Shown piece after piece: positions 23,091-63,515 of a stretch of 64,000 nucleotides of DNA (position 1 is the first letter of the stretch; each line of letters begins with the position of its first letter). Origin of the DNA: Macrostomum hystrix (lineage: Eukaryota > Animalia > Platyhelminthes); assembly GCA_950097015.1 (NCBI GenBank), contig CATNEN010000005.1, positions 5,704,001-5,768,000 on the forward strand. Reading direction: 5' to 3'. Both the position numbers and the translations under genes were made by a program. The notes under the pieces were generated by a model that searched no databases, was not told the origin of the DNA, and was given only the letters and a program-made list of their open reading frames with translations.

Positions 23091-23225
23091 TTCCAAACTT
23101 TGTTAATTTGGTTCTTTAGTATCGCAAGAATTGGTAACCAATATTGAAAAAATGACTATGTCGTAGACAAATCGGTACATTTTACAGCCAATCAGAGAGC
23201 GCCTGGATTGCTAAGAGCGTTGGTC

Positions 23226-26200
23226 ATGGATTCTCTGGACCGGTTGATTCGCTCGCTTGACCCGACCCGAACCGGTCAGTTGAACTGGGTGCAGCTGGTG
23301 GAGCTGTGCTCACATTTCTCCCTATCCAAGGAGGAGACTAATCGAGTAGTTCGAGCTCTGCTAGCCGACCCGCGGGGCAGCGTTAGCGAGCTCCGAGTTC
23401 GAGTTGAATTTCCGAAGGTGGTTCACGAACAGGTGGTGCCACCCAGTGTCAGTTCGGGTGAGGAGAACTTGAAAGAATATGCTTTTATTGTTACTGCAAC
23501 CAGTAGCGTGTTGCGCATTTTAATCGTTGGCTTTTAAAATTGTATTTTAGTTAGTTAAGTTTGGTTGTAGCCTAGTGGTTAGGGCGTCGGACTCACGACT
23601 TGAAGGTCGGGGGTTCGATTCCCGACTCCACTGAAACAATTTGTGTCCTTTAGCAAGACACTTAACTCTGCAGTGCTTCAGTTCACCCAGCTGTTAAACG
23701 GGTTCCAGCATTAGCTGGGATAATTGAAGGTGGGTGTGGCGTCCCCCCAGTCCATGGACTGAACAGCTGTACGCAGTCTTCAGATGCGCCGCGCAATAGC
23801 TGCGGCTGTGCTGTCGGCTGCACATCTGACACGATTGCGGCAGGTGTAAAAATTATTATAATTTTTATTTTAATTAGTACATGTAGGATTCTTACACAAA
23901 CTAGGTACAAAAGTGTATTTCGAGTGTAGAAAAAGAGTTAACCCAAATCAGGAGTTAGCTCGTACATATATTAGGCAAACAGCATATTGGGTCTGAAACT
24001 CTCTGAAAACCTGTTAGGCAGAAAAAATGGTTGGCACATGCTGAAATCACGTGATCGCATTCCTGTTCGATTTGTTTAGAGAACGAATCAGAGGGCAGCC
24101 TGGCAGAGCCGAAGTACGTTCGCGACGATGGCCGAGTGTTTGGAAGAAGGACGAGACCAAGGCAAAGAGTGAGTGGTGGATGAGTCTGTGAGGTCGGATT
24201 GGCATGCACAATCTGTTAACCTGTTAGACAGAATCCAACCTGTTAGATACACTTCAACCTGTTAGACACACTTCAACCTGTTAGATAAAGACTCCAAACG
24301 GTTAGACACACACTCCAACCTGTTAGACACACACTTGAACCTGTTAGACACACACTCCAACCTGTTAGACACACACTCCAACCTGTTAGACACACACTCC
24401 AACCTGGTAGATAATGACTCTAAACGGTTAGACACACGCTCCAACCTGTTAGACACACACTTAAACATCTTAAATACACACTCCAACCTGTTAGACACAC
24501 ACTCCAGCCTGTTAGATAAAGACTCCAAAATGTTAGACACACCCTCAAACCTGTTAGACACACCCTCAAACCTGTTAGACACACTCCAATCTTTTAGACA
24601 CATCCTGAAGCCTGATAGACACACCCTCAAACCTGCTAGACACACCCTGAAGCCTGTTAGACACACCCTCAAACCTGTTAGACACACTCCATCCTGTTAG
24701 ACACACCTTCAAACCTGTTAGACACACCCTCAAACCTGTTAGACACACCCTCAAACCTGTTAGACACACCCTCAAACCTGTTAGACACACTCCAATCTTT
24801 TAGACACATCCTGAAGCCTGATAGACACACCCTCAAACCTGCTAGACACACCCTGAAGCCTGTTAGACACACCCTCAAACCTGCTAGACACACCCTGAAG
24901 CCTGTTAGACACACCCTCAAACCTGTTAGACACACTCCAACCTGTTAGACACACCTTCAAACCTGTTAGACACAAACACGCACAAAATTTCACCATTGCT
25001 AAGAGATCTTAGCCATGTAAAAGGATTCAAATGCGGTTTTTGCCGGCATCAGCACTGTCACAGGGCTGCCCATTGTTTTACAATAAAAACCAACCAAGCG
25101 AAAAAAACATCTGCAGGATTTAGAAAAATTTTCTCAGTCTTGGCTGACTCAAAAATTTCCAGCCACCGGGGGTTAGAAACTAAGGGGAGAAATTTAGAGG
25201 AAGACAAAACGATTGGAAACGCCCGATCAATCGATCAATAATTTCAACCCCTGCAACGTCCCTCTGCCACTATTGCTCTCTCGTCCGATCCTCGCCATTC
25301 TCGACTCCTAGCCCAAAAAAGAATTCCAATTTTGCTACTAAAGGAACCGCGCATGAACATGACTTCTCCGTTGTTTGACCAAGAGTTCTGAGCATGTACA
25401 CTGCTCAGAGCAATATCAATATTCCTCAGCTAATCCAGAGAGAGAGGAGGTACTATATAAGAGTGCCAATATGACTCAAGCGAGATATTATTAAAACAGC
25501 AAGGCGTTCTATCAAGACAGCCCCAGAAGGAATTGAATTGCAAACTGTTTTATGGACACTTTCAAATCATTCTTCAAGGTGAGTTCCTCTAAAACCAATT
25601 ATCCATCTGCGTTTTGTTAGCTCAAGACAGAAGGCTATGAAATGAGAACTTGAAGACGCGTGTAATAAACGCAGATGAGTTTTTGAAATCTTGGAAAGAC
25701 ACTGACTCTACGTCACAACTTAAGAAGCTTCATCAGAAAATAAATTTTCGCATAAAATTTTAGTACGCATCATAGTCATAGCCAAAAATGCTAAGTATTC
25801 ATGCTCTCCTTTTATTGCTAGTGTGAGTTGTCTGCGTACCTAGCGTACAACTCGCTTAGTCGTGTCAATGCTTCTAAAAATAGTAACAGCTAGCTTGTTA
25901 GAAGACTGCGATCGTTAAATATTTCCTATAGCTCGTACCAGCCCTGGGAGGGCAGCCACTAGAATATCAAGGAACTGCTTGCCATGGTTCTGTAAGAGTA
26001 GCTTAACTATGTCTACTGAGTTGTTGAATTCTGACTTTGATAAGTTCCAAGAGCTCTCAACTGCAGGGGGTGCCAAATGTGAAAGAAGACGGCGTTTTTT
26101 CTGTAGAAATTTTATTTAAAAGACATAGAGAAGTGCCTCAATATGAATAGGATCCCTTTGTACTTTTGTTTCACTGCGTCGCTTAGACAATTCACAGTGG

Positions 26201-29200: not shown

Positions 29201-32200
29201 TTTTTTTCTAAAACATTCCTTATTTCTTTTGAATTTTGCACACCTTTTTTATTCCGTTTTAACTTTATTTATTTAAAGTGCTTCATTAAAAACAAATCGA
29301 TCCAGACCAGCCTCAGTCCGCGAATTCAAACCCTCCAGACAACCCACCTCACTCCCTGTGATCATATCCCTCGAGTCAACCCACCTCACTCCGCGAAGCC
29401 TAAACCTCCAGACAACCCACCTCACTCCGCTAAACCTAACCCTCCAGAAAACCCACCTCACTCCCCGTGATCCTAACCCTACACACAACCCACCTCACTC
29501 CGCGAATCCCATCCCTCCACACAACCCACCTCACTCCGCGAATCCAAACCCTCCACACAACCCACCTCACTCCGCGAATCCAAACCCTCCACACAACCCA
29601 CCTTAACACACTGACCTTTCTCAATGAAGCTAAATGAAATAAAAACTTGGCTCCTGTGCATCGTGATCCTCAATAAATGTCAAATTTAGGCCAACTGGCG
29701 GCAGCAGGCGCCCAGAGCGGTCGCACGGAAGAGGAATACCTGCGCTCGATCTGGCAGGAGCTTGGCGTTGGCCGGTCTGGCTATCTGACACTGCCAGAGC
29801 TGGCTAGAGTTTGCGAATACATCGGCATGGATGATCTGACTGATTCGGTTAGTGCATTAAAGCTTTTCTACTAACGAAACTTTTCTACTTCAGCGAAGAG
29901 TGAGGTGGGAAGAGCCGTGGAGGGGAGTGAGGTGGGTGCCTGAGGGTTAGGGAGTGAGGTGGGCGCATAAACGCACAAAGTGCCTGGAAAAGCTAGCTCC
30001 AGTAGGAGTTTATTTTTGAGATTCCTTCTTTATTATCTTCTCTCCCCTGCAGCACCTCTATCAGCTGTTTGAAAATCTCGATGAAGACGGCGACGGCCAC
30101 GTCTCGTTCAACGAGTTCGTTCGCGGCCTGTTTCGTCACACGCCGAATGCAAGCGTCAGCGGTCCTGTCGGCATCGCCGGGGGCAACACAGGAAGTCCGA
30201 GGCCGCCGTCTCGCGGCGCTGGAGGTCCATCCGGCGCACCGATGCGACGTTCTCGATCCTCCGGCACGCCTGGCAACACGGTGACGCTGTTCACATCGAT
30301 CGACAAGGACGGCAGCGGATACGCTCGCGGAGCGGACATCTGCCGATTTCTGTCGGCCAACGGACTTCTGAACGGCGAAGAGATCCTGAAGTTTCTGCAG
30401 TTCGACGCCAACTCGCGGGTGAACCTGGCCGAGCTGACTTACGCTCTTGACAGCGAACTCGCCGGAGTGACCGACGGTGTCGTTCAGGCTGGCATCCTGG
30501 CCTACCAGGCCGAGCTTCGGCACAGTCGGGCAGCTCTGGAGAGTGCCACGGCTGAGCGTAACAAACTGCGCATGGATCTGGCGGACGAGAGGCAGCGAGT
30601 CAGCAGCATTATCCGAGAGGGCGACGAAGGACAGCGCGAGGCTGAGAGGCATCAAGCCAAGCAGATGGCGTAAGTTGAAAAGCCCCATTGTGTTTAACAG
30701 TACAAAGACCAGGCTATTTTTCCGACTGGCGTAAGACCACGGGGATATTTCAAATGCCCGCTCCCCACTTCACGATAAGATCCCGAACGAATGACTGATT
30801 TTCGTGTAAGCCAGCAATTTAGATAAAAATTTTAGCCCGATGAAATAATTCTCAAAGCCATCCGACGTCAGCATCGTCGAGTTATTTCTGCGATTTTTGA
30901 CGAAGACCCTGGTGATAAGAACAATGACAACTTCTATGATAACTCCATATTTGTTTTTTAAAAAGTCCTAGTTAATAAGTTCAAAACAGTTAACAGTGAT
31001 GGCCGATACAGGGTGAATTTTGTAAGCAGAAAAATGTATTTCTGGTTCTTGCCACCTGACACTCCGACAAGAATCGGTGAATACCTCGACGATGGCGATA
31101 TTTTGTGATAAAGGAAGTTGTTTCATCGGATGGAGCGGAAAATGTTTGCCTCTGTTACGAATTTTCATGCCGATTGGCTGAATATTTTGAGAGATACAGG
31201 AAAAAAGGTGGAAATTTTAAGTACCCCCATTACGAGTACATTTTCGCCACTGTAATACCAACAGGCTGTAAAGATAGTAATAATCGATTAAAATCTTTAT
31301 TTTTTGCCCGTGTGCTTACCTATGAACAACAGAGCTCAAGGAATCGGCAACGAGAAGCTGATGGAGATCAAGGATAAGTACAAGTAAACAGGCTCTCTAA
31401 ATTAGTAGAAAATGCTTCGACAACAGACATTGAAGGAAAGCAGTGTCTTTTCATTGTTGTTCGTTGCTTTGATTTCTGATTGCGAATTTCTTTTAATTGT
31501 TGGACGCTGGTGTATTTCTTGCTTCATTGAAAAAAACGATGTATTAATTCTGATCTTTCTCCTTGCTTTCTTTCGAACAAAATTTTGTTACTGCTTCAAT
31601 AGTAAATTATAATTTGCTTATTACGTTGCTAACCATCAAAAGGAATGTAGAGAAGCGCTACCAGGAGCAGATTCGCAGCCTCCAAGCCCAGATGGATTAC
31701 GAGCGCGATCGCTTCCAAACTGAATTCCTGAAGCAGCGCAAATCGATGGAGCACGTGATCCTGTCGCTGAAGGACGAGGAGACTCGATTGAAAGATCGCA
31801 TCGCTAGTCTACAGAGAGTGAGTCTGAGTTTTTGTAGATGCGTCTATTTTTAGAAAAGATGAATCATTCAAATATTTGTGGCTATTTTTAGAATCAATGA
31901 CTCATTCGAGTCTTTGTGGCTATTTTTAGAATCCATGATTAATAGCAAAAGAAAGAGTTAAATATGACGCGATAACTCAACACGAGCATGCAATAGTCCA
32001 AACGTATTAAAAAACGCGATTAAACAAATACATTTTTAAAATTATATTTGCGCCAGGAAATGGGTCGATGCGAGAGCGAGCAAATGGATCTTGTGGAGCG
32101 TTTAGCCGAATCGGAGAAGCTTAATGTTCGTCAGCAACGAGAGCTGGACGCTGTGGCTGAGCTGCATAGGAAGGTGAGGAATGAAGCTAGTGGTGCTAAA

Positions 32201-35200
32201 AAATTATACTTTGTAACCTCTATAGCATTAGTAAGCCGCTAACTTTTTAAACAACTTTATAAATTTTCTTTAACTATCTAATATTCAACGCTCAGATGTC
32301 CAAGGAGATTAAGCAACTCAGAGACTACCGGGTAAACTATAATTATAATGGACTGGCTTTTATTAGAATATCGATCGGGACATTGCACAATGGTTATATA
32401 ACATGCATATTTGTCCGGTTTCCTCTGATAAATTATTTATTTATTTCCGAGCATAATTCACAAATCCAAAATCAAAAATATCATTGCACTTCAAAAATTT
32501 TGTTTTACCATAGCTACTCACTGGACAGGGAATGAACAAGGTAAAAATGAAGAGGAAGACTTTACGAGACGAACTTTATTTTGTTTTAGGGATATCATTA
32601 GACTGTTCTTATTATAAAAAAATCGAAAGAAAATTAAATATCTATGGTTCTGCTTATTGTTGTTTAGGTGATTGGCTCCTTTCGTTAATTTTGGTGTCAG
32701 TTTTTCGTCTCTCCCATTTTATTTGCCACTCCCTTTAGTCGCTAAAAAATCGCCGAAATTTGCATTGAATATGAAACAAACCCAGCTGAACTCCATGGAG
32801 GAGCAGCTGAAGGACAGTGTGCCGAACAAGCAGCATCTGCAGCTGCAGGCTGAGGCTCATGACTTGCGCGGCCAACTCAAACGACTTCGCGACTACGTTG
32901 ACGAACTCGCTGGCCGGCTGGGGCCGCGGAAACGACGGCGCCGTAGTCGCGGCGATACTCTAGACGATCCGACTGCATCTTCAGAAGTTCGGCCTCACGA
33001 CGATGATGGCGACGAAAGATCTAAAGATAGGAGTCAGAGTGCTGGCAAGAGAGCTGACACTGTCCTCGAGGAGCATCGAGATGTCATGGTGGCTACGAGA
33101 CGGTCGAAGCCTTTGATTCGGAAGTTGACAGGTAAATTTGTTGGTTCCTGTGCGACTGTCTTAAAAAGTTTGAACTAGTCTAATAGTTCACGTCATGAAC
33201 GGGGTGAGTGGCAGACAGGTTATCGCGTTTGCCTATCGCACCAAGGTCCCTCAGCTCGATTCCGCGGCAATGTGACATTTATTTGGGGCGCAGCCGCGGA
33301 GAGAATGCTTGGAGGCTTGTCGTGCAATTTACGCCCTTAAGGGGCCAACCTCCAAGGGACACAGTGAAAGTGTACACTGCCTGACGATGAGAAAGTCAGG
33401 GCAGATGTACATACCGATGTGAGTATGTGCCTGTGTACAGTATCCGAGTGGCGTGTGTGCTCAGGAGTCAGCGAAATGTGCAGAATTGCCTCCTGGCTGG
33501 CTGCGGGTCCAGTCATTGCCCTCCAGCAATTATTATTGTTTCTTTATTACATGTTCTGCACCTCATCATAATTCTTAGCTGAGACAGAAACTGAAGAAGA
33601 AGCGGAATGGCTGGTCGGCAACAAGGTCCAAGCGTCAGCTTACAACGACGTTGTTGAAGCATTGAAGCACAATTTCGAAGAAAAATTAACCAAGTGAGGG
33701 CTTGGCATTCTGCTTTTGGTGACAAACTACTACTGATGGGATGTCCCTAGCATTATCGTTTATATTGTTTAGTAGCTAGCTGAAAACTCGCCATCCTCGT
33801 GCTTTTTAGCCTGGAGAAGAAGCACAACCAGGATCTAGTGCTCAGACTGCAAGCGGCAAAGCTACTCTACGACAAGAAGATTGAAGACATTCGCTCGAAA
33901 AATCTAGCATTGCAAGAATCTAACGAGAGAAAAGACGCAACGATTGGTATTTTGGTGAGTGAATGGTTACCTTTGGTCAATCTGCCCCATGTGCCCCAAT
34001 TGGGACAGATGTACAGCCGACAGCACAGCCAAAGCTATTGCGCGGCGAATCTGAAGGCTGCGTACGGCTGTTTGGTGCAAGAACTGAGGGACGCCACACC
34101 CACCCTGAATTACCCCAGCTGATACTGGTAACCATTTAACAGCTTGGTAACCTGGAGCAATGCAGTCTTAAGTGTCTAGCTAATGGACACAAATTCTTCC
34201 AGTGGAGTCGGGAATCGAACCTTCGACCTTAAAGTCGTACGTCCGACGCAATAACTAGGCGAAAAAATTCACTGCGTACAACTGTACAGTACAGTTCTAC
34301 ACCAGATACACAAACTTTTATTATTCATTCGAACTCGATTCGAACTCATGACCGCCCAAGTTAAAAGTCCGAATCCGTTACCTCTTTCATTACTATTTTA
34401 AAACAGAGCAGTGCAAAACCAATTACGGCTATCCTATTAATAATTTCAGCGTCTCGACGTAGAAAGTCTAAAACAGGCTCGCGACGAACTTGATGAGAAG
34501 CTTCGTCAGCTAAATGAGCAGCTGGATCAAATCGATACAGCCATGCTAGACGACCTGCCTGAGACTGTACGGAGACAGGTGGGCGATCTAGTGCGCGCGC
34601 GTCTGGCGCATCTGCACGCTCTGGATCGAGCTCGTCTGCTGCGCGAGTTTGCTCAGCACAAAGAGCGGCTTCTATTGCTGGCGGCTCAAAATGAGGCTAC
34701 GTCGACTGCCGACGCTCAGACGCAAACTGGAGACAATCTGGAGCAGTTAGGAACAGTGAGTATTGTGCTGGGGAATAAGTACATTACCAGAAATCGAAGA
34801 CTTTAGTATTCATGTGTGGGAGGAACGAATGAACAAAGACAGACGACAACATGTTTTTCGGTTGTTAAGCATGGCCTCAAAGTGCACATGTACAAAATGT
34901 AATTTTAAAGTTAAAATAGATGCCTATACGAGAAGTGAACTTTCTTATAAAAAAGCATGCCTATTTTAAATAGCCCTATCTGTTGCGGTTCTAGGCAAGC
35001 AAAGTCAAAAAAATGGTTTCCAATTTCAGCAGCCCGCAAATGCTAGTCTGCTTCAAGACGCAGCGCAGGCTCTGAGTCGAGTAGACCAGCTTCAATGGCT
35101 GTCGGAACTACCAGAATCGGAGGCGCAGAGCATTGCTGGTGCCGTCTGCGACCGCCTGCAACAGCTGAAGGGAAAGCGTCCCACAGTCAGCTGCATTCCA

Positions 35201-38200
35201 GTCAGAGTAAGCATTGGATAAAACCAAACTGCATGCATAGCAGTACAATACAAGCTTTGACAGTAGAAGGGGTAAGGACCGCAGTGGTATTTCAAATACC
35301 CACTACCGACTACACGATAGCTCCAAAATCGAATGACCAATTTTGGTGAAAGTGCACCATATGGATCTAAATTTTCCAAGGCTGTCCGATGTCAACATCG
35401 TCGAGATATACAGCGATTCCTGTCAAAGACCAAGGTGACGAGTACAACTAACACTGATCGCCATAAAACTCTTTAGCAAATCTTTTTTAGTTCCAAAATT
35501 AAAAAAATGCAATCAATCAAAATTAGTAAAAAAGGATAGCCGACATCTTTACATTATGAAGTTTTGTGAACAGTAAAATAATGCCGATTTTTTCTTTTTT
35601 TTGCCAATTGACACCCCGACGAGAATCATTGAATACATCGACGATGTTCTGGAAATTGTTTCAGTACATTAGGTAAAGTGAAAAATGTAGCCTATATTCT
35701 GGGCTTTCATGGCAATTGGTAGAATATTTTGGAAGATACAGAGAAAAGAAAACTAAAAAACTGTCTTTCTACTGTTAAAAACATCGTTTATTACTTCAGA
35801 AGGCCGATAAGCAACAGATTTATGAGGCAACTCAAGTGCTCAGCAAACTGCCTGAGCTGCATTGGCTTCAGGAAATGCCGCAGGATGAAAGAATTAGCCT
35901 GGTAGGCAATGTCTGCGACAACTTACAACATTTCAAAGAGACTGGCGGACTTGGTTTGCAAGGTTTCGATGGAAGCCAGGTAGGTTCTGATGTCAAAGGT
36001 GATTCAAATTATTTTTCAAACAAAGCAGGAATTTACCCAACAACTGACAAACACTTCAGCAACCAGGTGCTCAATTCATATTTGAAGCGACTGAGGCATT
36101 TATCCGTGCGCCGGAGCTCAGTTGGATTCAAGAGCTGCCTCTGAATGAGCGTTCGATGATGACTGATGCCTTGCGCAATAGTTTACAGAGCTTCAGAACG
36201 ACACCGGTAAATTTATTTGAAAAAACGTTATAATAGTTGAAAGTGTACCTCACAAATGACTCATAAAGTAAATTTTATACCACTAAAAAATTCAGCCATA
36301 TACAAAAGAAATCTTGCGAGCTGCTGCACAAATGCTTGGCAAAGTTGCGGAGTTGCAGTGGCTGGAGAGTCTGCCAGAGTCAGAGCAGATCACACTGGCA
36401 GCCGCCATGTGCGACAAACTGCAGCAGCTGAAGGACCCAGAGTTCAGGTCCAAGTATTCAGCATCAACTGCAGTCCGACAAGTAAAAATACATTTCCGCC
36501 TTACATTGCCACCAAATCACGCTCGATAACACAACGATAACATACTTTGTCGAATTTTCAGCCTCCAGACTCAGCGCTGCTCCAGCGAGCTGCCGATGTG
36601 CTGAGCGAGTCGGCCGAGCTGCACTGGCTCAAGCAGCTGCCTCAGTCTGACAGACTGCTGCTGGCTGAAGCCATCTGCGACTCCCTGCAGCAGCTGAGAG
36701 CCAGCCATCAGGTGGCGTCGGCCAGCCAGCAGGTGGCGTCGAGGAACGCTCAGGTGGTGCTGGAGGCCACGGAGCTGCTGAGCAGAGTCCCCGAGCTCAG
36801 CTGGATCCAGGAGCTGCCTCAGAGCGAGCGGTCGAGACTGGCAGCGACCGTGTGCGACAGCCTCCAGGGCTTCAGGAGCACTGCATCCTCAAGTGCTGTA
36901 AGATATTTTTAGTTGTTTGCTGTGATACAACAACAAACAACAACAATATACGCCAGGTCTCTCCATGGTCCATGGATACACAAGTAGAGACTAGAGCTTA
37001 CGCATGAATAATCTCCTGACACTCTGCAGCCCAAGGATCAGGCGGTGCTTCAAGAAGCGACAAAGACGCTGATGGAGGTTCCTGAGCTTCAGTGGCTGCA
37101 GAGTCTGACTCAGTCGGAGCAGATCTCACTGGCAGCCGCCATGTGCGACAAACTGCAGCAGCTGAAGGACCCGCAGCTGAGGGCCAAGTACCTGACGGCT
37201 GCTTCTGCTAGACCTGTGAGTTCACGTCTAAAAGTCATGTCAATTTTTTACATCTAGCTGCTAGGCTAAAATATAGCACAGGTTCAACTCTAAAGTATTC
37301 GTGCTTTGTGACGGGCTCGAATCGAGAAATGCGAAAAGAAGATACAAGGTTTATATGCAGTGTAAAAATGCTTTGTAAAGGATTTTAGATAATTATATAA
37401 AAAATGCCTTCTATAGATCTCATATTTGTCTGTAGCATTGCCACATTCAATAAGTGTGCTTTCAATGTAAGGGCTGTATTCCTTGTGTCAATAGCCACCA
37501 CTTTCATAGCTTTTAATTGACAAGTAAACTGGGCCTAGAGCAGTTTTATATTTGGTGCCAAGGCCAAAAGCTTCTTTGAAACTGAAATTTTCCAGTAGTT
37601 TTCCTACACAACCTAACTTTGATTATTTAGGCGCAGGATTCTCAGCTGCTCCAGCGAGCTGCCGATGTGCTGAGCGAGTCGGCCGAGCTGCACTGGCTCA
37701 AGCAGCTGCCTCAGTCTGACAGACTGCTGCTGGCTGAAGCCATCTGCGACTCCCTGCAGCAGCTCAGAGCCAGCCAGCAGGTGGCATCGAGGAACTCTCA
37801 GGTGGTGCTGGAGGCCACGGAGCTGCTGAGCAGAGTCCCCGAGCTCAGCTGGATCCAGGAGCTGCCTCAGAGCGAGCGGTCGAGACTGGCAGCGACCGTG
37901 TGCGACAGCCTCCAGGGCTTCAGGAGCACTGCATCCTCAAGTGCTGTAAGATATTTCTTGCTTTAAGTTGTGAAAGCACATGGCTGAAACTAAAGCCGTC
38001 AATCGCTGACACTCTGCAGCCCAAGGACCAGGCGGTGCTTCAAGAAGCGACAAAGACGCTGATGGAGGTTCCTGAGCTTCAGTGGCTGCAGAGTCTGACT
38101 CAGTCGGAGCAGATCTCACTGGCAGCCGCCATGTGCGACAAACTGCAGCAGCTGAAGGACCCGCAGCTCAGGGCCAAGTACCTGACGGCTGCTACTAGAC

Positions 38201-41200
38201 CTGTGAGTGCAAGTCTAAAAATTCTAGTCAATATGTTATAGATCTTCTACTTCTACTTCTATAGTGCGCCTTCGCTTTTGGCCTGTATTCACTTTGTCCA
38301 TCGTCAAACTTTCATAGAATTTTCACACATCGAGCAAGCTAAACCTAGAGATACGAATTCGCTCGCAAGCCTCGCTTGTCGAATGAAGGACGCTTGTCAA
38401 ATGTGAATTTCATCCTAACATCGTAGTTTTCTCTTATTGTCTTGTGGTCGCTTAAGCAGCTGAAGTGATAAACACAGCTTTGCAATCCGCAGTAACACCT
38501 TGCAAAGAAAACAGTAACATTAAATTACAAAATCAATAACTACTGAGTTCTGAAAACATTTTAGTTCAAGGACGACGATAATTTTATGCCACAACGCGAC
38601 ACAATGTGTCACGAAATTCTTTGAACATCTTTCAAAGTGAACTATTCCTGTAGTTTGTTCTAAAAAACTACATTTTGATTATTTAGGCGCAGGATTCTCA
38701 GCTGCTCCAGCGAGCTGCCGATGTGCTGAGCGAGTCGGCCGAGCTGCACTGGCTCAAGCAGCTAACTCAGTCTGACAGACTGCTGCTGGCTGAAGCCATC
38801 TGCGACTCCCTGCACCAGCTGAGAGCCAGCCAGCAGGTGGCGTCGAGGAACTCTCAGGTGGTGCTGGAGGCCACGGAGCTGCTGAGCAGAGTCCCCGAGC
38901 TCAGCTGGATCCAGGAGCTGCCTCAGAGCGAGCGGTCGAGACTGGCAGCGACCGTGTGCGACAGCCTCCAGGGCTTCAGGAGCACTGCATCCTCAAGTGC
39001 TGTAAGATATTTTTAGTTGTTTGCTGTGATACAACAACAAACAACAACAATATACGCCAGGTCTCTCCATGGTCCATGGATACACAAGTAGAGACTAGAG
39101 CTTACGCATGAATAATCTCCTGACACTCTGCAGCCCAAGGATCAGGCGGTGCTTCAAGAAGCGACAAAGACGCTGATGGAGGTTCCTGAGCTTCAGTGGC
39201 TGCAGAGTCTGACTCAGTCGGAGCAGATCTCACTGGCAGCCGCCATGTGCGACAAACTGCAGCAGCTGAAGGACCCGCAGCTGAGGGCCACGTACCTGAA
39301 GGCTGCTGCTGCTAGACCTGTGAGTTCACGTCTAAAAGTCATGTCAATTTTTTACATCTAGCTGCTAGGCTAAAATATAGCACAGGTTCAACTCTAAAGT
39401 ATTCGTGCTTTGTGACGGGCTCGAATCGAGAAATGCGAAAAGAAGATACAAGGTTTATATGCAGTGTAAAAATGCTTTGTAAAGGATTTTAGATAATTAT
39501 AAAAAAATGCCTTCTATAGATCTCATATTTGTCTGTAGCATTGCCACATTCAATAAGTGTGCTTTCAATGTAAGGGCTGTATTCCTTGTGTCAATAGCCA
39601 CCACTTTCATAGCTTTTAATTGACAAGTAAACTGGGCCTAGAGCAGTTTTATATTTGGTGCCAAGGCCAAAAGCTTCTTTGAAACTGAAATTTTCCAGTA
39701 GTTTTCCTACACAACCTAACTTTGATTATTTAGGCGCAGGATTCTCAGCTGCTCCAGCGAGCTGCCGATGTGCTGAGCGAGTCGGCCGAGCTGCACTGGC
39801 TCAAGCAGCTGCCTCAGTCTGACAGACTGCTGCTGGCTGAAGCCATCTGCGACTCCCTGCAGCAGCTCAGAGCCAGCCAGCAGGTGGCATCGAGGAACTC
39901 TCAGGTGGTGCTGGAGGCCACGGAGCTGCTGAGCAGAGTCCCCGAGCTCAGCTGGATCCAGGAGCTGCCTCAGAGCGAGCGGTCGAGACTGGCAGCGACC
40001 GTGTGCGACAGCCTCCAGGGCTTCAGGAGCACTGCATCCTCAAGTGCTGTAAGATATTTCTTGCTTTAAGTTGTGAAAGCACATGGCTGAAACTAAAGCC
40101 GTCAATCGCTGACACTCTGCAGCCCAAGGACCAGGCGGTGCTTCAAGAAGCGACAAAGACACTGATGGAGGTTCCTGAGCTTCAGTGGCTGCAGAGTCTG
40201 ACTCAGTCGGAGCAGATCTCACTGGCAGCCGCCATGTGCGACAAACTGCAGCAGCTGAAGGACCCGCAGCTCAGGGCCAAGTACCTGACGGCTGCTACTA
40301 GACCTGTGAGTGCAAGTCTAAAAATTCTAGTCAATATGTTATAGATCTTCTACTTCTACTTCTATAGTGCGCCTTCGCTTTTGGCCTGTATTCACTTTGT
40401 CCATCGTCAAACTTTCATAGAATTTTCACACATCGAGCAAGCTAAACCTAGAGATACGAATTCGCTCGCAAGCCTCGCTTGTCGAATGAAGGACGCTTGT
40501 CAAATGTGAATTTCATCCTAACATCGTAGTTTTCTCTTATTGTCTTGTGGTCGCTTAAGCAGCTGAAGTGATAAACACAGCTTTGCAATCCGCAGTAACA
40601 CCTTGCAAAGAAAACAGTAACATTAAATTACAAAATCAATAACTACTGAGTTCTGAAAACATTTTAGTTCAAGGACGACGATAATTTTATGCCACAACGC
40701 GACACAATGTGTCACGAAATTCTTTGAACATCTTTCAAAGTGAACTATTCCTGTAGTTTGTTCTAAAAAACTACATTTTGATTATTTAGGCGCAGGATTC
40801 TCAGCTGCTCCAGCGAGCTGCCGATGTGCTGAGCGAGTCGGCCGAGCTGCACTGGCTCAAGCAGCTAACTCAGTCTGACAGACTGCTGCTGGCTGAAGCC
40901 ATCTGCGACTCCCTGCACCAGCTGAGAGCCAGCCAGCAGGTGGCGTCGAGGAACTCTCAGGTGGTGCTGGAGGCCACGGAGCTGCTGAGCAGAGTCCCCG
41001 AGCTCAGCTGGATCCAGGAGCTGCCTCAGAGCGAGCGGTCGAGACTGGCAGCGACCGTGTGCGACAGCCTCCAGGGCTTCAGGAGCACTGCATCCTCAAG
41101 TGCTGTAAGATATTTCTTGCTTTAAGTTGTGAAAGCACATGGCTGAAACTAAAGCCGTCAATCGCTGACACTCTGCAGCCCAAGGATCAGGCGGTGCTTC

Positions 41201-44200
41201 AAGAAGCGACAAAGACGCTGATGGAGGTTCCTGAGCTTCAGTGGCTGCAGAGTCTGACTCAGTCGGAGCAGATCTCACTGACAGCCGCCATGTGCGACAA
41301 ACTGCAGCAGCTGAAGGACCCGCAGCTCAGGGCCACGTACCTGAAGGCTGCTGCTGCTAGACCTGTGAGTGCAAGTCTAAAAATTCAAGTCAATATGTTG
41401 TAGATCAAGCTGCTAGCCTAAAATATAGCTCTGCTTCATCTCAATAGTCTGCATGTTTTGTTACAGGCTCAAAAAATAGCGCTAAAGATAGAGAACTTTT
41501 ATTGTAAAGAAAATATGTGTTGTCGCGAATTTGAAATGGTTATAATAAAGCACTTTTAAGATCTCATCCTTCGCTATCTTATAGCCTACTTCTATAGTGC
41601 GCCTTCGCTTTTGGCCTGTATTCACTTTGTCCATCGTCAAACTTTCATAGAATTTTCACACATCGAGCAAGCTAAACCAAGAGATACGAATTCGCTCGCA
41701 AGCCTCGCTTGTCGAATGAAGGACGCTTGTCAAATGTGAATTTCATCCTAACATCGTAGTTTTCTCTTATTGTCTTGTGGTCGCTTAAGCAGCTGAAGTC
41801 ATAAACACAGCTTTGCAATCCGCAGTAACACCTTGCAAAGAAAACAGTAACATTAAATTACAAAATCAATAACTACTGAGTTCTGAAAACATTTTAGTTC
41901 AAGGACGACGATAATTTTATGCTACAACGCGACACAATGTGTCACGAAATTCTTTGAACACTTCTAGATATTTTTGCTTGACCAAGGCCAAAACTATCTT
42001 TCAAAGTGAACTATTCCTGTAGTTTATACTAAAAAAACTAATTTTGATTATTTAGGCGCAGGATTCTCAGCTGCTCCAGCGAGCTGCCGATGTGCTGAGC
42101 GAGTCGGCCGAGCTGCACTGGCTCAAGCAGCTGCCTCAGTCTGACAGACTGCTGCTGGCTGAAGCCATCTGCGACTCCCTGCACCAGCTGAGAGCCAGCC
42201 AGCAGGTGGCGTCGAGGAACTCTCAGGTGGTGCTGGAGGCCACGGAGCTGCTGAGCAGAGTCCCCGAGCTCAGCTGGATCCAGGAGCTGCCTCAGAGCGA
42301 GCGGTCGAGACTGGCAGCGACCGTGTGCGACAGCCTTCAAAGCATGAAATCTGGCGTTGGCTCGTCCAGACAGTCTGCTCAGATTGCTGTGAGATTTAAT
42401 TTCTGTGAAATAACGCCTTTGAGTTTTAAAATCAATCAGCTACTCCAATGTTCTCATTTCAGCAGCCGGATCTGCGCACTGTTTTCGAGGCCACTGAGCT
42501 TTTAAGCAAAGTTCCGGAGCTGCATTGGATTCAGGAGGTGCCACATTCGGATAGAACTAAGCTGGCTGCTGCTATTTTCGACACTCTGAATAGGCAGAGG
42601 AATAAAGAACATGTCCAAGTATCAGCAGCACCAGCGTTGACTGTGAGTTTTCAGTTTTTTTACATTTTTTATCTTACATGGAAGGTGGTTGATATAAGTT
42701 AGTAGCTGTGTTTTTCTCTTCTCATGCACAGCCTAAAGATGCTCAATTCGTTTTCGAGGCAACTGAACTGCTGAGCAGAGTCCCCGAGCTCAGCTGGATC
42801 CAGGAGATGCCAGCAGGTCAACGGATGAACCTGGCTAATGCTGCTTGCGACAGCCTCCAGAGAGCGAAAAACAGAACTGGGACTAGGCTTGAGTTGAACT
42901 TCCCGGTAAGTTTTTGAAACCTAAATCATAAAATTCGGAAAGTAAGTCTTGACGTTACGATCGATAAAGTTTAATCGATTTTCCAGCCTCAGCACGCTCA
43001 AACGGTATTTGAAGCAACCGAACTGTTAGGCAATTTGCCAGAGCTGCGATGGATTCAGGAGCTGCCTATGGCTGACAGGAACATTCTAGCTGCCACCGTC
43101 GCAGAATCTCTTCAAAGGGGCAGAACTGCACCTGAGCAACCGTCTTCACTTGCGTCGCTTGCCGAATCGCTGCCATTGACTTCAGCGCACGGCGCGTCAA
43201 CTGTTAGGAAAGCTGTTAACTCAACCAGCTTCTATATCGATCGGTCTTGGAAATATCGAACTGTAGGGGTGTGTACTTTTGCTTGTGCAATCGTTACAAA
43301 GACTAATCTAACAAAGACCTGAAAACAGATTATAGACCAATTTATTGTAAACGAAGACTGTGTAGCCGAATGAAGCTTATACATTTTAAATTGGTTTCTT
43401 CTACAGCCCAGAATTGCAATGTCAGCCTCAAGTGGTCGAGCGAACGCAGTATCGAGTTCATCGTTAACCAACAATGCTTCATCATCAGAGGAAGCTGAAG
43501 CAGATCATTTAGCACTGAGCGTGGACACAACAGACAACGCTGTGATAGTTGTGCCAAGTGATGCTTCTCTGATGCAAACAATGCCGCCAAAGGTTAGTAG
43601 CTTGCGTAATTAATGTCGCCATTCTGCAATTTTACATTCTTATCATATAATTAATTTTGTTTCGGAATAACAAATTTCAGATCTTCAGAATGAAAACAGC
43701 ACTGAATAATATTAATTAGAGATCCTTACCCATTGTTCCCTTGCTTATTTGGTACATGGTATTCTCATTAAAGCATTTTTGTCAAAATTACTCATTGGTT
43801 GATGGTATTGAAGTTATATTGTAGTTTTTGTTTGAATCGGTCGGAAAAAACACCAGAAGCCCAATTACTGTTCGCTATCTAGGACGAACGCGTCGAAATG
43901 CAGAACCTGAAGATTCAACTCGAGAAAGAGATCGACGAACTGAGGAGAACGAAAACCCTTGACGAGAATTATCGCAGCAAAGTGGACGAACTGAATGCCA
44001 CGAACGAGCGACTGCAGATGCAGAATCAACAGGCTGAGGAGGCCATCGCGCACATGGCTCAAAACGAGGCCGCTGTTAACGCCGCTGAGAAGGTCAGTCT
44101 AGAATTCCAACTTCTTATCGCCTCAAATTTATTTGATAGGGGGTCGGTGGCAGAGTGGTTGACGCGTTTGCCTCTCGCACCAAGGTCCCTGAGCTCGATT

Positions 44201-47200
44201 CCGCGGCGAGGCCACATATATTTAGAGTGCAGCCGCGGAGAGAAGGCTTGTGGGTTGTCGTGCAATTTACGCTCTTGAGGGCCAACCTCCAAAGTGCAGC
44301 GAAGTGTACACTGCCTGACGATGAGAAAGTCAGGGCAGATGTACACACCTGTGTGAGCGTGTGCCTGCGTACAGTATCTGTGTGCGTGTGTGCTCAGGAG
44401 TCAGCGGAATGTGCAGAATTGCCTCTTCGCTGGCTGCGGGTCTAGTGTCACCAAATGATGTGCCATTGCCCGCAGCCCACATGCAATTATTATTATTATT
44501 ATTTGATATGACTTTATCTGTTAGTTAATGACTACACGTGTTAGATATAACTACAGCAGTTAGATATGGCTACACCTGTTAGATATGACTGCATCCGTTA
44601 GGAATCTGTAAGGCATATATATTTTGAAATATATATGACACTCCTGTAACATGCATGTTTATTGTTATTTTCTAAAATTTAGCTTCTAATCAGTTCCAAG
44701 AATCTTCTAAGGACGTCACAGGTACACCAAATTACTATACCAAGCAATCTCAAATACTTAATTGGTCAAAGAAAATAAATGCAATATTTTCCGGTGATAG
44801 AAATGACCTACTCTATCTTTGTAAGCAATGCAAATATCTAGGTGTCACACGGGCCGTTTGAATACTGAAATGAATATTTTCTGCATTATGGTGTCTGTAA
44901 TACACTTCTATTGCTAGAATATTTGCTTGATTGTGGTTAAAAATATTAACAACAATGTACACACAGGCGGAAAACCAGTTTCTCAACATTGAGAAGCGGC
45001 ACAACGAGCTTTTGCAGGTGAAGCTAGTCTGTTTAATTTTATTTTCTACTGTAAAATAACACATGGTTGGTGAAAGGTTTTTGTGTGATTTCTTGGAAAG
45101 TGTTTAATTCAATAATGTTAGTTTTTTGTTTCATTTATTAATTATACAAATGTTCTGATTCAATCAATTCGTAGTTCAGTACGTTGATAAAAAAGTCCAT
45201 GGACTAATTCCAATACCATTCCATGTTGCACCAATTTTATTGATGGGTGAACTGAAGCAACAGGGTATTAAGTCTCTTGCTCAAGGACTCAAAATAGTTT
45301 TTCTGGGATTTGAGCTTGTGACCTCTCGCTGTCAGAATTTCAAAACTTCAACAACTTGGCTACAAGCTTCCTTACTTATTAAATTAGATACAATCAATAC
45401 GAACATGTCAATTTCGACATGTCAAATCTACGAGTAACTCATTTAAGGCGGCCAATGAGCGTTTCGCCAAGGAGAACAAGAAACTAGAAGAGGAGCTCGA
45501 GGAGACCAGAAAACGACTCAACGAAGCCGAAGCTGAGCTTGAGTTCAAATCTAAGGAGTGCAGTGGACTCAAAGTGAGTCTATTCTATTGACATGTCATT
45601 CTGGCTATGAGCTTATGCGGACTCAAAAAAATGTTTCGTAAAGCAAATCTTTGGTTCTAGGAAATTCGAGTTAACTTAATGCACTATCATCGTTATATTT
45701 TTAGTTCTTATTTTTTAAACATGAATAATCACAACCGTAAATTATCTTTTGTTATTTGTTAAAACTTGCATACACTCTGCTTCCTAATCCTTATCATTTT
45801 CACTCAGGAAAATCACGATAAGCTCACAGAGGCTGTTAGTAAGGGCCAACAGAATCTGGAAAAGGAGATGGTCTACTGCGACATCAAACAGAAAGAGATT
45901 GACGACTTGAAGGTGCCAATTAATTCACGCCTTTTATGTTCTTCCTCCGTGGGTCATTATTGGGGAAAGTACAGTTGCTTCGGATCCGATCAAACAAAAT
46001 CAGAGCGATGGAAAATGATTTATTTACAGAAAAATGTCGACAGACTAACCGCCGAGCGTGACAAAACCAAGGAGCTGCTTGAGAGGACGCGAACCGATTT
46101 GGAGGATAAAAGCAACGAGCTTGACGAATGCCAAGTAATTTGATGGCTAGAAGCTGGCAAAATAGCTTTTATTTACAAGGGGACTAGATGGTTCAAGTAG
46201 GTGGTGAGTGGCATAGCGGTCTAATGCCTCTCGCACCAAGGTTCCCCGAGCTCGATTCCGCAGCGAGGCCACATTCAGTTGGGGCGCAGCCGCGGAGAGA
46301 AGGCTTGGACTGCTTGTCTCGAAATTTTCGCCCTTGAGGACCAACCTAGCAAGGCACAGCGAAAGTTTACACTGACGGAAGATGAAAGAGTCCATATCTG
46401 TGTGCTCTATCACTCTATCCGCTGTGCATGGGGGTTGGTCCTCAGGTCGCCAATCACCCCTTGGTGCCGGAGTCAAACGAGTTTTCACTCTGGCACTGAC
46501 CCTCGAAGATTAGGATCACGCAGATAGCTAGTATTAAGATTGCAAAACATGCAAAACAAACAAAAATAAAAACCGATCAACACTATAGAAAAAGTTGGAA
46601 CAACTGCGTACCGACAAAGACCAGCTAGAAAAGAATCACAAAGACCTGGAACTGAAACTCGAAGCCGAGCACAAAGAGAAGGACTCACTAACTGAGGCGA
46701 ACAACACAATGACCTCCGCACTGGACCATAGCAACAAGAGCTTGGAGGATAAAAGCGGAGAGCTAGAACGGAAAGACGAACAAATGAAGGAAGCAAAAGT
46801 GAGATTTTTAGTTTGAGCAGGCTTTGAGCGGCTCTGATCACTCTTGTTCGTAAGAAACAATATCAGTAGAGTAACTGATGAAACTCCACTCTGCAGGATG
46901 AAGCAGAAAAGTACAAGCAAGAGAATGAAGAGCTCGAAAGAAAAGTTATCACCGCCGAGAAAGAGGTCGAGAAGAAGGACGACGAATTGAAAAGTCTTCA
47001 GGTTGTCAAGTTGCCAAGTCGTTTATCGTGCTTTCTTCTCCTATTTTTAATTAAAAAGAGAACGATGGCTTTCCTGGAGGTCTTGTTTTGTTTAATTGAC
47101 ATCGTTTCGGTGATTTTGAATCGGTGCTTTATTCTTGGAAACTTTTCCTCCGATGTTTTCGACCAGATTTTCAAGCCGGTTGAACAGAAATCAGAGGATA

Positions 47201-56200: not shown

Positions 56201-57985
56201 GACGCCGAGGGTCAATACTCCGCCAGGAAAGCAGCTGAAGAGTTTGCCAATCGTCTGGATCGCACACTGCGCAAGAAGGAGCTGGAGGCTGAGAAACTGC
56301 TAGAGGAGAAGCGCGCCCTTGAAGCCCAGGTGGAGGAGCTGAACAATCAGCTGCGCACTGATAGAACTGACCGCAATCGCTACAATGAGCTCATTCAGAA
56401 ATTGAACGAGGCTCAGAAGAAGGCCGACACGCTGGAGAAGGCGCTCAATATGAAGAATTCTGAGACGTCCAAGATGTTGCTTAGTAAGTGATCAATGTAT
56501 CTGTTTGAGTTGGACCCTTTGCTTAGCAATGCGTTGAAATCTGCTGGTGTGATACTAGTAGATAGAAGCTTAGGGGTTTTGGCTATACGAGTACATTTCT
56601 GAGCCTTAAGAGTACAAATACCCCAGGTGTTTTAAATACTTCACGATAGCTCCCAGACCGTCAAAATCCACCATATGGATCAAAATTTTCCACCCTTCAA
56701 GAAGAACTAACATTCAAAGCCATCCGGCGTTAGCATCGTCGAGATATTCAGCGATACTTGTCGAACACCCTGGTGATTCATATTGCTGTAATAATAATAA
56801 AATTACCAATATTATCAATACATCATCAACAGTAACAGCCGACATGGTTACATGATGAAGTTGTGTGAGAATAATAATAATTGATTACACCTGCCCCAAT
56901 TAGGCCAGATGTGCAGCCAACAGCACAGCCGCAGCTATTGCGCGGCGCATCTGAAGGCTGCGTACGGCTGTTCAGTCCATGGACTGGGGGGGACGCCACA
57001 CCCACCTTCAATTATCCCAGCTGATGCTGGTACCCATTTAACAGCTGGGTGAACTGAAGCAATGCAGAGTTAAGTGTCTTGCTAAAGGACACAAATTGTT
57101 CTAGTGGAGTCGGGAATCGAACCCCCGACCTTCAAGTCGTGAGTCCGACGCTCTAACCACTAGGCTACAACCTCTACTAGGCTACAACCTCTACTAGGCT
57201 ACAACCTCTACTAGGCTACAACCTCTACTAGGCTACAACCTCTACTAGGCTACAACCTCTACTAGGCTACAACCTCTACTAGGCTACAACCTCTACTAGG
57301 CTACAACCTCTAGGCTAAAACCTCTACTAGGCTACAACCTCTACTAGGCTACAACCTCTACTAGGCTAAAACCTCTACAAGGCTACAACCTCTACTAGGC
57401 GACAACCTCTACTAGGCTACAACCTCTACTAGGCTACAACCTACAACAACAGTGAGAAGAAACAAGGTCTATATTGATGGTTTTTGGCCACCTGACACCC
57501 CGACTAAAATCGTTGAATATCTCGACAATGCCGATATTAAAATGATTCTGGAAGTTCGTTTCACTTCACTTCGTGGACTTTCTCGTAGCTCGTACTAGTT
57601 ACGAGAGCTGGTACAGCATTTTAAAGCAAGGAGGCATCGCAAACATAATTTGTTAATTAATCCCGACTTCGCAGACACCCAAGAAGGCTACCAACGCCAG
57701 ATGCAGAACGAGCGTCGGGATCGCGAAGAGATGCAACAGAAGATGGAGCGCCAGCAGCAGCTACTGGCAGAACAGACTGACAAGATGAAGAAACAGCTGG
57801 AGAGGACGACCAAGACAGACCAGCTGCTCAAGGAGCTCTACGCTGAGAATGCTCAGCTGATGAAGGCTCTTCAAGTGACTGAGCAGCGGCAGAAGGTGGC
57901 GGAACAGCGCTGTCAACAGTTGGACGACAAGTGCAGAAATCTGCAGAAGGTTCTGGGCAGAGTCAGCCAGTCGGCTGTTCATTAG
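23226..57985 (+). CDS. NIN: Ninein/ninein-like (Bsg25D-type) EF-hand + coiled-coil centrosomal protein, ~51 exons, ~3,600 aa including a ~1,370-aa repeat insert
   Basis: Family motifs: LDPTRTGQLNWVQLVELCSHFSL (N-terminal EF-like), EPKYVRDDGRVFGRRTRP, EEEYLRSIWQELGVGRSGYL...QLFENLDEDGDGHVSFNEFVRGLF, LFTSIDKDGSGY, and C-terminal LLKELYAENAQLMKALQVTEQRQKVAE. In-frame GT-AG exons: 23188/23226-23457, 24080-24168, 28376-29054 (acceptor uncertain), 29690-29847, 30053-30669, 31333-31383, 31643-31817, 32057-32173, 32296-32331, 32786-33131, 33579-33693, 33810-33954, 34450-34755, [18 repeat exons 35030-43202], 43407-43592, 43883-44092, 44967-45017, 45448-45573, 45808-45912, 46030-46134, 46589-46798, 46897-47001, 47233-47337, 47731-48036, 48131-48235, 48604-48879, 50861-51310, 51416-51520, 51674-51865, 52025-52129, 52315-52419, 52693-52842, 56198-56483, 57675-57985. 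Confidence 0.88.
23563..23860 (+). mobile_element. SINE family A (tRNA-derived head, CORE-like central domain, ATT tail), full length
   Basis: A box TAGCCTAGTGGTTAG, B box GGTTCGATTCCC, central TGTGTCCTTTAGCAAGACACTTAACTCTGCAGTGCTTCAGTTCACCCAGCTG; near-identical antisense copy at 56869-57171. Confidence 0.9.
24215..24975. repeat. 21-23-bp minisatellite (AACCTGTTAGACACACACTCC / AAACCTGTTAGACACACCCTC)n in ninein intron
   Basis: Direct reading; a ~100-bp variant block is duplicated at ~24585 and ~24790. Confidence 0.9.
25454..25578 (+). promoter_or_regulatory. Candidate internal TATA promoter and short first exon (MDTFKSFFK|GTGAGT)
   Basis: TATATAAG at 25454-25461, ATG at 25552, strong phase-0 donor AAG|GTGAGT at 25578, compatible with the phase-0 acceptor at 28376. 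Confidence 0.35.
26232..26745. repeat. 16-bp purine-rich minisatellite (AGAGATGAGACACGGG)n, ~32 units
   Basis: Direct reading, period 16. Confidence 0.95.
26887..27153 (+). CDS. Candidate alternative ninein exon / alternative N-terminus (MTERAPYGSPNRPQSTGSR...HVKRLIR)
   Basis: GC-rich open frame between CCCAG|CCATG and AGAG|GTTAAG; 267 nt, phase 1-1, in frame with ninein exon 29690. No homology recognised. Confidence 0.45.
27340..28156. repeat. 21-bp minisatellite (GTAGCTAATGAAGGTTCAGGG)n, ~39 units
   Basis: Direct reading; PEPSLAT periodicity on the minus strand. Confidence 0.95.
29305..29605. repeat. ~37-39-bp C-rich minisatellite (core AACCCACCTCACTCC), ~8 units
   Basis: Direct reading; inverted copies of the core lie at 29898-29963. 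Confidence 0.85.
30735..31240 (+). mobile_element. Degenerate MITE-like element (family M)
   Basis: Left arm GGGGATATTTCAAAT...GCATCGTCGAGTTATT; right arm GAATACCTCGACGATG...ATTTTAAGTACCCC, forming an imperfect inverted repeat. Related arms at 35270-35720, 56620-57570 and 62940-63060. Confidence 0.5.
33201..33540 (+). mobile_element. SINE family B copy
   Basis: Colinear with 44139-44503 (GCCTATCGCACCAAGGTCCC...GCAGCCGCGGAGAGAA...GAGAAAGTCAGGGCAGATGTAC...GCTGGCTGCGGGTC, ATT tail). Confidence 0.85.
33985..34260 (-). mobile_element. SINE family A copy (antisense, moderately diverged)
   Basis: Reverse complement aligns with 23563-23860 including the B box (GGGAATCGAACC on +). Confidence 0.85.
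35030..43202 (+). repeat. Array of 18 phase-0 coding exons encoding 24 copies of a ~45-aa helical repeat inside ninein; 36562-42388 is a tandem exon+intron amplification
   Basis: Exons 35030-35206, 35800-35979, 36060-36206, 36296-36481, 36562-36897, 37030-37215, 37631-37945, 38020-38202, 38687-39001, 39134-39319, 39734-40048, 40123-40305, 40790-41104, 41179-41364, 42056-42388, 42463-42642, 42732-42905, 42987-43202. All lengths are divisible by 3, stop-free and GT-AG bounded. Confidence 0.88.
35270..35720 (+). mobile_element. Degenerate MITE-like element (family M)
   Basis: GGTATTTCAAATACCC...CAACATCGTCGAGATATAC...GACACCCCGACGAGAATCATTGAATACATCGACGATG shares both arms with 30735-31240. Confidence 0.5.
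44139..44503 (+). mobile_element. SINE family B (tRNA-derived head, (ATT)n tail), full length
   Basis: A box GGTGGCAGAGTGG, B-box-like GAGCTCGATTCC, ends in ATTATTATTATTATT; at least 6 copies in the window. Confidence 0.9.
46196..46445 (+). mobile_element. SINE family B, diverged 5' portion
   Basis: GCCTCTCGCACCAAGGTTCCCCGAGCTCGATTCCGCAGCGAGGCCACATT...GCAGCCGCGGAGAGAAGGC. Confidence 0.75.
49008..50030. repeat. 16-bp minisatellite with unit switch: (CATTTTAACAAAGCAT)n then (CATGACACCAAAGYAT)n, ~64 units
   Basis: Direct reading; transitional unit CATTTCACCAAAGCAT at ~49161. Confidence 0.95.
50475..50815. repeat. 26-bp minisatellite (GATCACTTACTTAGTGATGTCTCTGA)n, ~13 units
   Basis: Direct reading; unit holds the hairpin ATCAC-TTACTTA-GTGAT. 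Confidence 0.95.
53178..55025 (-). CDS. TRPV/TRPVL-like cation channel (degenerate ankyrin repeats + 6 TM), 615 aa, intronless, nested antisense in ninein intron 52843-56197
   Basis: Ankyrin-like SNPFLLAVMYD...LDVSAISECGFTSYH and NCYHMRPLDWGMYCGYADFV. Pre-S1 LDFTEVV..GPERSVSLLSV resembles TRPV YDLTEID..EQSLLELI. Six hydrophobic segments; pore YRTFLITLNVFDTG; S6 MAFILLVPVLFINFVVGVLS. Start context AACAATG. Confidence 0.82.
   Translation of the reverse strand: MSKLVKVSPKDGQVSEATAQPQLNIWSFIDEDQWPTVVTIILRDDAEQLRRFLESRGPDWRGFLQSCDTEGQKRQCPQRFRSYDKSVRVSKRLVQHPYPSNPFLLAVMYDARSCCELIRRMAEGLDVSAISECGFTSYHTLFAGLDIIRAEAQPSSEEARSSDYLRFFLREFFSVEEVTRMSTMRNCYHMRPLDWGMYCGYADFVDELLYRSHMSVIHSGMSGLMEHVELDFTEVVCTGPERSVSLLSVMSNVFGESRVSELGVFRRPLVLAPLIDEFHGRHRFLLFTLCIFLLFDVCLLLAGCDTTYRNFVDAACSPPAQPLPALFIVTRSVLMATRALVMVSDLLGRLRKTLYRRRLGFPNWPRRADIESLVMMAPVCLSILTDASLLSLMSSPEAACRLLGAAGFRSLSGSLVLVDLLLLICALVTSARLLPIVSKFINSFYRSFAMFANFLFVYLLMLVTFSRLFQVADRSATASSGGNSSLATQELDAFSATYRTFLITLNVFDTGVFQPNLDRTDLMLTHMAFILLVPVLFINFVVGVLSSIVGTTMQYDIECRYLMKLSFSEYCEATLFWLFKIWELFVGERRLVLSICRPLTKNSRTLSCLSSDLKM
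55711..55997 (-). mobile_element. SINE family B copy (antisense, internal deletion)
   Basis: Reverse complement has head GGGGGTCGGTGGCTGAG and 3' end GCTGGCTGCGGGTCTAATGTCACCAAATGATGTGCCATT + ATT tail. Confidence 0.85.
56869..57171 (-). mobile_element. SINE family A, full length, antisense
   Basis: Near-identical reverse complement of 23563-23860. Confidence 0.9.
57161..57445. repeat. 17-bp minisatellite (CTCTACTAGGCTACAAC)n, ~16 units, derived from the SINE A 5' end
   Basis: Unit reverse complement GTTGTAGCCTAGTAGAG versus SINE head GTTGTAGCCTAGTGGTTAGAG; contiguous with the SINE. Confidence 0.92.

Positions 57986-63462: not shown

Positions 63463-63515
<53 letters not shown>

Follow-up and report, generated by a model that had tools for sequence, protein, structure and literature searches.

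An array of 24 repeats, predicted to form small three-helix units, in the middle of a ninein-family gene of Macrostomum hystrix

The host gene and its repeat block

A 64,000-nucleotide stretch of the genome of the flatworm Macrostomum hystrix (assembly GCA_950097015.1, contig CATNEN010000005.1, positions 5,704,001 to 5,768,000 of the forward strand), here called the window, carries a ninein-family gene whose middle is occupied by a block of 18 exons encoding a short helical repeat. Ninein acts as a dynein adaptor and as an anchor at the centrosome. An earlier note, made from the sequence alone, had described this block as 18 phase-0 exons with 1,371 codons and 24 copies of the repeat, and all of these figures were confirmed by the splice signals and a profile scan. 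The features are listed in Table 1.

The host gene was modelled as 42 exons (eight, the 18 repeat exons and a further 16), picked by hand from translations and splice signals. Joined, they read without a stop for 3,120 codons, starting with the ATG at 29677 and ending with the TAG at 57983, and every donor was GT in the frame and splice check. In the database searches the exons served as queries one by one, alongside proteins taken from the databases. The assignment to the ninein family, already proposed from the sequence, is supported by EF-hands, coiled coils and a NIN/NINL-like tail. A Pfam EF-hand match was obtained in exon 30053-30669 (E 1e-8), and proline-free stretches rich in E, K, Q and R, at residues 201-400 and 2101-3120, correspond to long coiled coils after the EF hands. 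In the ESM Atlas, NINL and NIN clusters rank top for the last exon at 0.96, followed by other coiled-coil clusters at 0.95, with a recognition score below the threshold of the tool, so that this match is supportive and short of proof. The EF-hand region and the start of the first coiled coil (CC1) also closely resemble those of human NINL and NIN; the CC1 region gave no matches as query in a length-limited protein search. Further 5´ exons near 23193 are possible, where a degenerate EF-hand-like stretch may represent the first ninein EF pair; no Pfam match was found for it. Directly upstream of the ATG lies an Ala/Pro/Gln-rich open frame of 277 codons (28307-29137, + strand), which may be another 5´ exon.

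The model shares EF-hands and pseudo-EF hands, long coiled coils and the NIN/NINL-type C-terminal motif with NIN, NINL and Drosophila Bsg25D. The exons from 31643 to 34755 also encode a DxxD pair (residues 396/399) and a Spindly-like stretch (453-457), at a spacing similar to that in NIN, both of which are kept in Macrostomum lignano. In the dynein–dynactin–NIN structure, the dynactin contacts are D549/D552 and the Spindly motif spans 605-609 (doi 10.64898/2026.04.25.720804). The fit of pattern and spacing to NIN is by position only in both species, and the fifth Spindly position is His. Since these counterparts precede residue 665, where the repeat block begins, the block lies behind the adaptor part of the protein. 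Unlike NIN and NINL, the modelled Macrostomum protein contains 1,371 amino acids of non-coiled-coil helical repeats in its middle, and the model reaches at least 3,120 amino acids, compared with 2,090 for human NIN and 1,382 for NINL.

Each repeat exon is bounded by an AG acceptor and a GT donor, is phase 0-0 and has a length divisible by three, for a total of 4,113 nt; six of the 18 hold two copies and twelve hold one. The flanking boundaries at 34755 and 43407 were also correct as first given, both in phase 0. A six-frame scan of the window with a repeat profile built from 13 copies (alignment A1) returned exactly 24 full-length matches (74-91 bits), every one of them in the region 35033-43124 of the + strand, while the best match outside the block reached 10.7 bits. 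As most copies belong to the profile, these scores indicate uniformity rather than independence; the independent test is provided by four M. lignano copies, which score 40-76 bits. The repeat unit comprises 46 residues plus a variable spacer (linkers of 3-16 residues), and its frame is open, with no stop or frameshift in any copy. Positions A10, L20 and W22 are invariant across ten local types and the four M. lignano copies, in agreement with the invariant LxW described earlier. Most of the conserved positions are apolar and probably buried, the polar positions E9, E19, D40 and Q43 are well kept, and the net charge is -1 to -3 in all ten local types. A proto-repeat in exon 34450-34755 was considered and rejected (-2 bits, with 147 of 300 shuffles scoring equally high; hhalign probability 0.5%).

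Table 1. Exons and repeat units of the ninein-family gene (positions in the window)
Feature	Position	Strand	Evidence or remark
Possible upstream exon, degenerate EF-hand-like stretch	23193..23456	+	Seen in translation; boundaries unsettled
Ninein head: exons 29677-29847 and 30053-30669	29677..30669	+	EF-hand pair, pseudo-EF hands, CC1 start; frame check
Six exons: rest of CC1, linker, CC2	31643-31817, 32057-32173, 32786-33131, 33579-33693, 33810-33954, 34450-34755	+	
Repeat exon 1, type W01	35030..35206	+	Groups with M. lignano repeat 1, weak support
Repeat exon 2, type W02	35800..35979	+	Best match is M. lignano repeat 2, 61% identity
Repeat exon 3, type W03	36060..36206	+	57% identity to same-position M. 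lignano repeat 3
Repeat exon 4, type W04	36296..36481	+	54% identity to M. lignano repeat 4; basic tail common to both
First amplified unit: double exon 36562-36897 (W05, W06), single exon 37030-37215 (W07)	36562..37215	+	
Unit 2, about 1.05 kb	37631-37945, 38020-38202	+	Self-BLAST, intron comparison
Unit 3, about 1.05 kb	38687-39001, 39134-39319	+	Self-BLAST, intron comparison
Unit 4, about 1.05 kb	39734-40048, 40123-40305	+	Self-BLAST, intron comparison
Unit 5, about 1.05 kb	40790-41104, 41179-41364	+	Self-BLAST, intron comparison
Sixth double exon, end of amplified block	42056..42388	+	
Repeat exon 16, type W22	42463..42642	+	Profile scan
Repeat exon 17, type W23	42732..42905	+	Profile scan
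Repeat exon 18, type W24, then Ser/Ala-rich spacer	42987..43202	+	Profile scan
Ser/Ala linker exon, low-complexity, after repeat block	43407..43592	+	
Fourteen coiled-coil exons, many of 35 or 70 codons	43883..56483	+	Each entered in phase 0
Last exon: NIN/NINL-type C-terminal motif, TAG stop	57675..57985	+	ESM Atlas

Coding status, identity and history of the repeat

Comparison of the ten old types gave a pS of 0.70 (synonymous sites) and a pN of 0.38 (non-synonymous sites), and the differences at the three codon positions are 0.45, 0.31 and 0.60, highest at the third. These sequence comparisons show that the repeat is protein-coding and under purifying selection, in line with the long-term selection proposed earlier. 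Two M. lignano proteins, P0001 and P0003 (A0A1I8JLS9), which are gene models and not transcripts, join the same upstream coiled-coil exons to matching repeats whose order is unchanged. Identity to P0003 is 59-88% over the coiled-coil exons from 32786 onward, which lead straight into four repeats that match exons 1-4 of the block in order with 48-61% identity. In the tree, repeat 2 and its M. lignano counterpart pair at 92/90 and repeat 1 does so at 85/84, while repeats 3 and 4 are placed in the appropriate subgroups without one-to-one resolution; M. lignano repeat 3 scores higher against type W06 than against W03. By this order and the tree, at least four repeat types are older than the species split.

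Residues 383-446 of P0001 appear as a partial duplication of its own of the repeat-4 type, so that either the M. lignano array changes too or the model is mis-joined. The UniRef names of P0001 and P0003 (PLU-1, DUF4201) were not reproduced by Pfam for P0003. A further protein, P0002 (E 7.5e-4), is not a relative, its match being an unrelated low-complexity repeat.

The same data bear on whether the block could be a separate nested gene or non-coding duplicated DNA. A later ninein intron does host a nested opposite-strand open reading frame. The repeat exons, however, share strand and phase with the flanking exons, have no start or stop exon of their own, are joined to ninein exons in both M. 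lignano models and are under purifying selection, which makes this explanation very improbable.

The repeat has no match in Pfam, NCBIfam, the PDB, the ESM Atlas or fold searches, and a profile search of 1.84 billion proteins gave matches only in M. lignano. No short repeat-bearing fragments were found at 90% clustering, and none in metagenome contigs. In the literature, no report of such repeats was found in any ninein; ninein and Macrostomum were mentioned together in a single paper, a general review, and the supplements of three Macrostomum papers contained no ninein entry. The earlier view of an unrecognised, lineage-specific repeat is therefore upheld: restriction to the genus Macrostomum is supported as far as the databases reach, and the repeat is a candidate new small domain family.

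The small three-helix fold suggested earlier agrees with an AlphaFold (AF2) model of the single unit, in which helices span residues 3-15, 18-25 and 28-45 and the predicted local distance difference test (pLDDT) score is 84. The predicted conserved apolar face (L7, A10, L14, L20, W22, L34, A35, C39 and L42) is broad and rich in small residues. In a four-repeat model, residues 52-166 align as one compact domain consisting of two paired neighbours, which weakly suggests that neighbouring repeats pack in pairs. The beads-on-a-string arrangement of the earlier note has consequently become uncertain, the paired model itself being of low confidence.

Derivation of the unit from part of a known domain by strong divergence is quite improbable; candidates were the N3A helices of cyclic-nucleotide-binding domains, BSD, PRD and the histone fold. 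The N3A helices and the repeat have in common a short helix-turn-helix in which the turn contains Val-Pro and a helix begins with Leu-Pro/Ser-x-Glu; the repeat, however, lacks the beta-barrel and the phosphate-binding cassette, and its turn is three residues longer and carries the invariant Trp. Kinship to the N3A helices of PKA/PKG was rejected; the Foldseek match had E above 1 and found no support with VIA or HMMER. A complete cyclic-nucleotide-binding domain is likewise excluded by the absence of the eight-stranded beta-barrel and cassette, the all-helical models, the spacers of 3-16 residues and the lack of a Pfam match. BSD domains consist of three helices and a C-terminal Phe-Trp pair, a combination that the repeat does not show. 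PRD domains and fused histone doublets share 4-13% identity, with scores within background and unrelated function, and gave no significant structural or profile match. Finally, the bacterial Unstab_antitox family (PF09720) reached 24 bits only by summing two copies of one double exon; two of 13 single copies matched at E 0.01. Membership would take one small antitoxin domain that scores above the gathering threshold by itself, and this assignment was also rejected.

The 24 copies comprise 16 distinct peptides and ten old types. Only these ten types are old: 17 of the 24 copies (36562-42388) represent just three types, which multiplied through tandem duplication of the DNA. The duplicated unit measures about 1.05 kb, is formed by a double and a single exon, and is present five and a half times in two versions. 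Between the two versions the introns (within 36898-42055) show no more than 62-70% similarity, whereas the double exons have just five nucleotide differences in 92 codons (exons about 98% alike), which points to gene conversion confined to exons. A later 2.1-kb duplication has left copies separated by four substitutions and one indel, their introns being otherwise identical; the last intron (41365-42055) is chimeric, with parts from both unit versions. Variants common to non-adjacent copies argue for real duplication, although the youngest copy may be an assembly error. The tandem duplications, of 1-2 kb, are recent, and the central copy number is probably only loosely constrained. Counting 24 copies makes the array look older and more diverse than it is. 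As the majority of copies arose by recent duplication, the array is less unusual than it first seemed.

Outside the block, tail exons of 35 or 70 codons (43883-51520) are alike in register, scoring 12.9 against 4.6 for heptad-shifted controls (standard deviation 1.7), and the coiled-coil tail probably also grew by exon duplication. Tandem copying of symmetric exons, unequal crossing over and exons more alike than introns are features shared with other exon-duplicated arrays under concerted evolution, such as those of spidroins, mucins and nebulin. Unlike these, the Macrostomum unit is predicted to fold as a domain and lies within a conserved motor adaptor.

Possible role of the array

The best explanation, given a probability of roughly one half, is that the array is a multivalent docking or self-association segment in Macrostomum ninein that was enlarged by exon duplication. 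One symmetric exon encoding a 46-residue three-helix unit would have been duplicated repeatedly, enlarging the middle of ninein, and the repeat exons would be spliced into the main mRNA. The units would pack two by two, either within a chain or across both chains of the ninein dimer, and would form a flexible, net-acidic array that starts about 200 residues behind the dynein–dynactin-binding head and ends before the coiled-coil tail. Such an array could act both as docking or self-association segment and as spacer, linking ninein, where microtubules are organised, either with a partner or with further ninein dimers, while dynein activation would be left alone. The pairing of units, the flexible acidic array and the multivalent role have about even chances of being correct. 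Direct binding to the acidic microtubule surface is less likely because the array is net negative.

The vertebrate protein offers a parallel. Exon 18 of vertebrate ninein (amino acids 807-1518) is the CEP170-docking segment (PMC12651242), and it is also a splicing-switch precedent, being skipped in neurons and changing where ninein anchors (PMC6429586). Like the repeat block, it is large, central and keeps the reading frame, and it follows the adaptor head after a similar distance; with an offset of about 153 to NIN, the start of the block comes near that of exon 18. However, the vertebrate segment is one 2,121-nt exon with proven skipping, and the Macrostomum segment is an 18-exon array with no apparent sequence relation to it. 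An unlikely extension of the parallel is that a self-pairing domain zips ninein dimers together or binds many partner copies, with a splicing switch that evolved independently of exon 18 from unrelated sequence.

Several observations weigh against a docking or self-association segment. The four-unit model is weak (pLDDT 68, predicted template modelling score 0.49, five models at 53-68, from an alignment of 13), and the positional match to exon 18 is offset arithmetic and not an alignment. Furthermore, the M. lignano models end once repeat 4 or 5 is reached, the first repeat of M. lignano is basic (+3), and the length-limited, clustered protein searches returned no complete ninein from this species that contains repeats.

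The absence of such a protein would also fit a regulated switch, in which inclusion or skipping of the block, or of parts of it, depends on the cell type and alters ninein anchoring, but it can be explained by the clustering and the search length limit. A switch, which is compatible with docking or self-association, has a real but minor chance of being right. It is favoured by the exon 18 precedent and by the frame, which is kept when splicing runs from 34755 to 43407. The earlier note had taken the phase 0-0 exons as a sign of combinatorial isoforms; this reading is not supported, since phase 0 is the background of the gene (18 of the 22 introns outside the block). Exon symmetry is not evidence of alternative splicing because a duplicated exon must be symmetric to survive. 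Moreover, the donor sites of the repeat exons seem as strong as those of the coiled-coil exons, and there is no AATAAA nearby for an isoform ending after the last repeat.

Alternatively, the array may be a passive folded spacer whose units add only length and flexibility, with conservation reflecting folding alone. The mostly apolar conserved positions, the variable length of the linkers, the recent change in copy number and the apparently parallel growth of the tail by exon duplication are consistent with such a spacer. Nevertheless, it is rather unlikely, as the polar positions are well kept and the order of repeat types 1-4 is maintained between the species, suggesting position-specific roles.

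Little is understood of the middle of ninein, or of the way in which the dynein-activating head is connected to anchoring sites. A large, selected and apparently folded array shows that the ninein middle tolerates, and may exploit, new domains, and it illustrates clearly the concerted evolution of exons within a cytoskeletal gene. The reach of this observation is limited to one flatworm genus so far, where RNA interference and transgenesis make the role of the array directly testable.

Neighbouring features of the window

The nested frame in the later ninein intron (52843-56197) is an intronless open frame of 633 codons on the antisense strand (53181-55079, -). It has no Pfam or PDB sequence match, and a number of hydrophobic segments towards its end hint at a membrane protein that may be channel-like. 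Converging on ninein, an RPEL-repeat exon and a Gln/Asp-rich exon (61980-63658, -) probably belong to a PHACTR (phosphatase-and-actin-regulator) gene. Upstream, the exons of a gene with a PARP catalytic domain (14203-17798, +) are split by minisatellites, with a Pfam E of 9e-10 for 15579-15956, and a 704-codon open frame at 3-2114 (+), with an EGF-like stretch and a hydrophobic tail at its end, likely encodes a membrane protein. Short interspersed repeat copies, SINE-like (resembling short interspersed elements) and seen as recurring translations, are located at 33200-33520, 44140-44480, 46200-46520 and 62680-62900.

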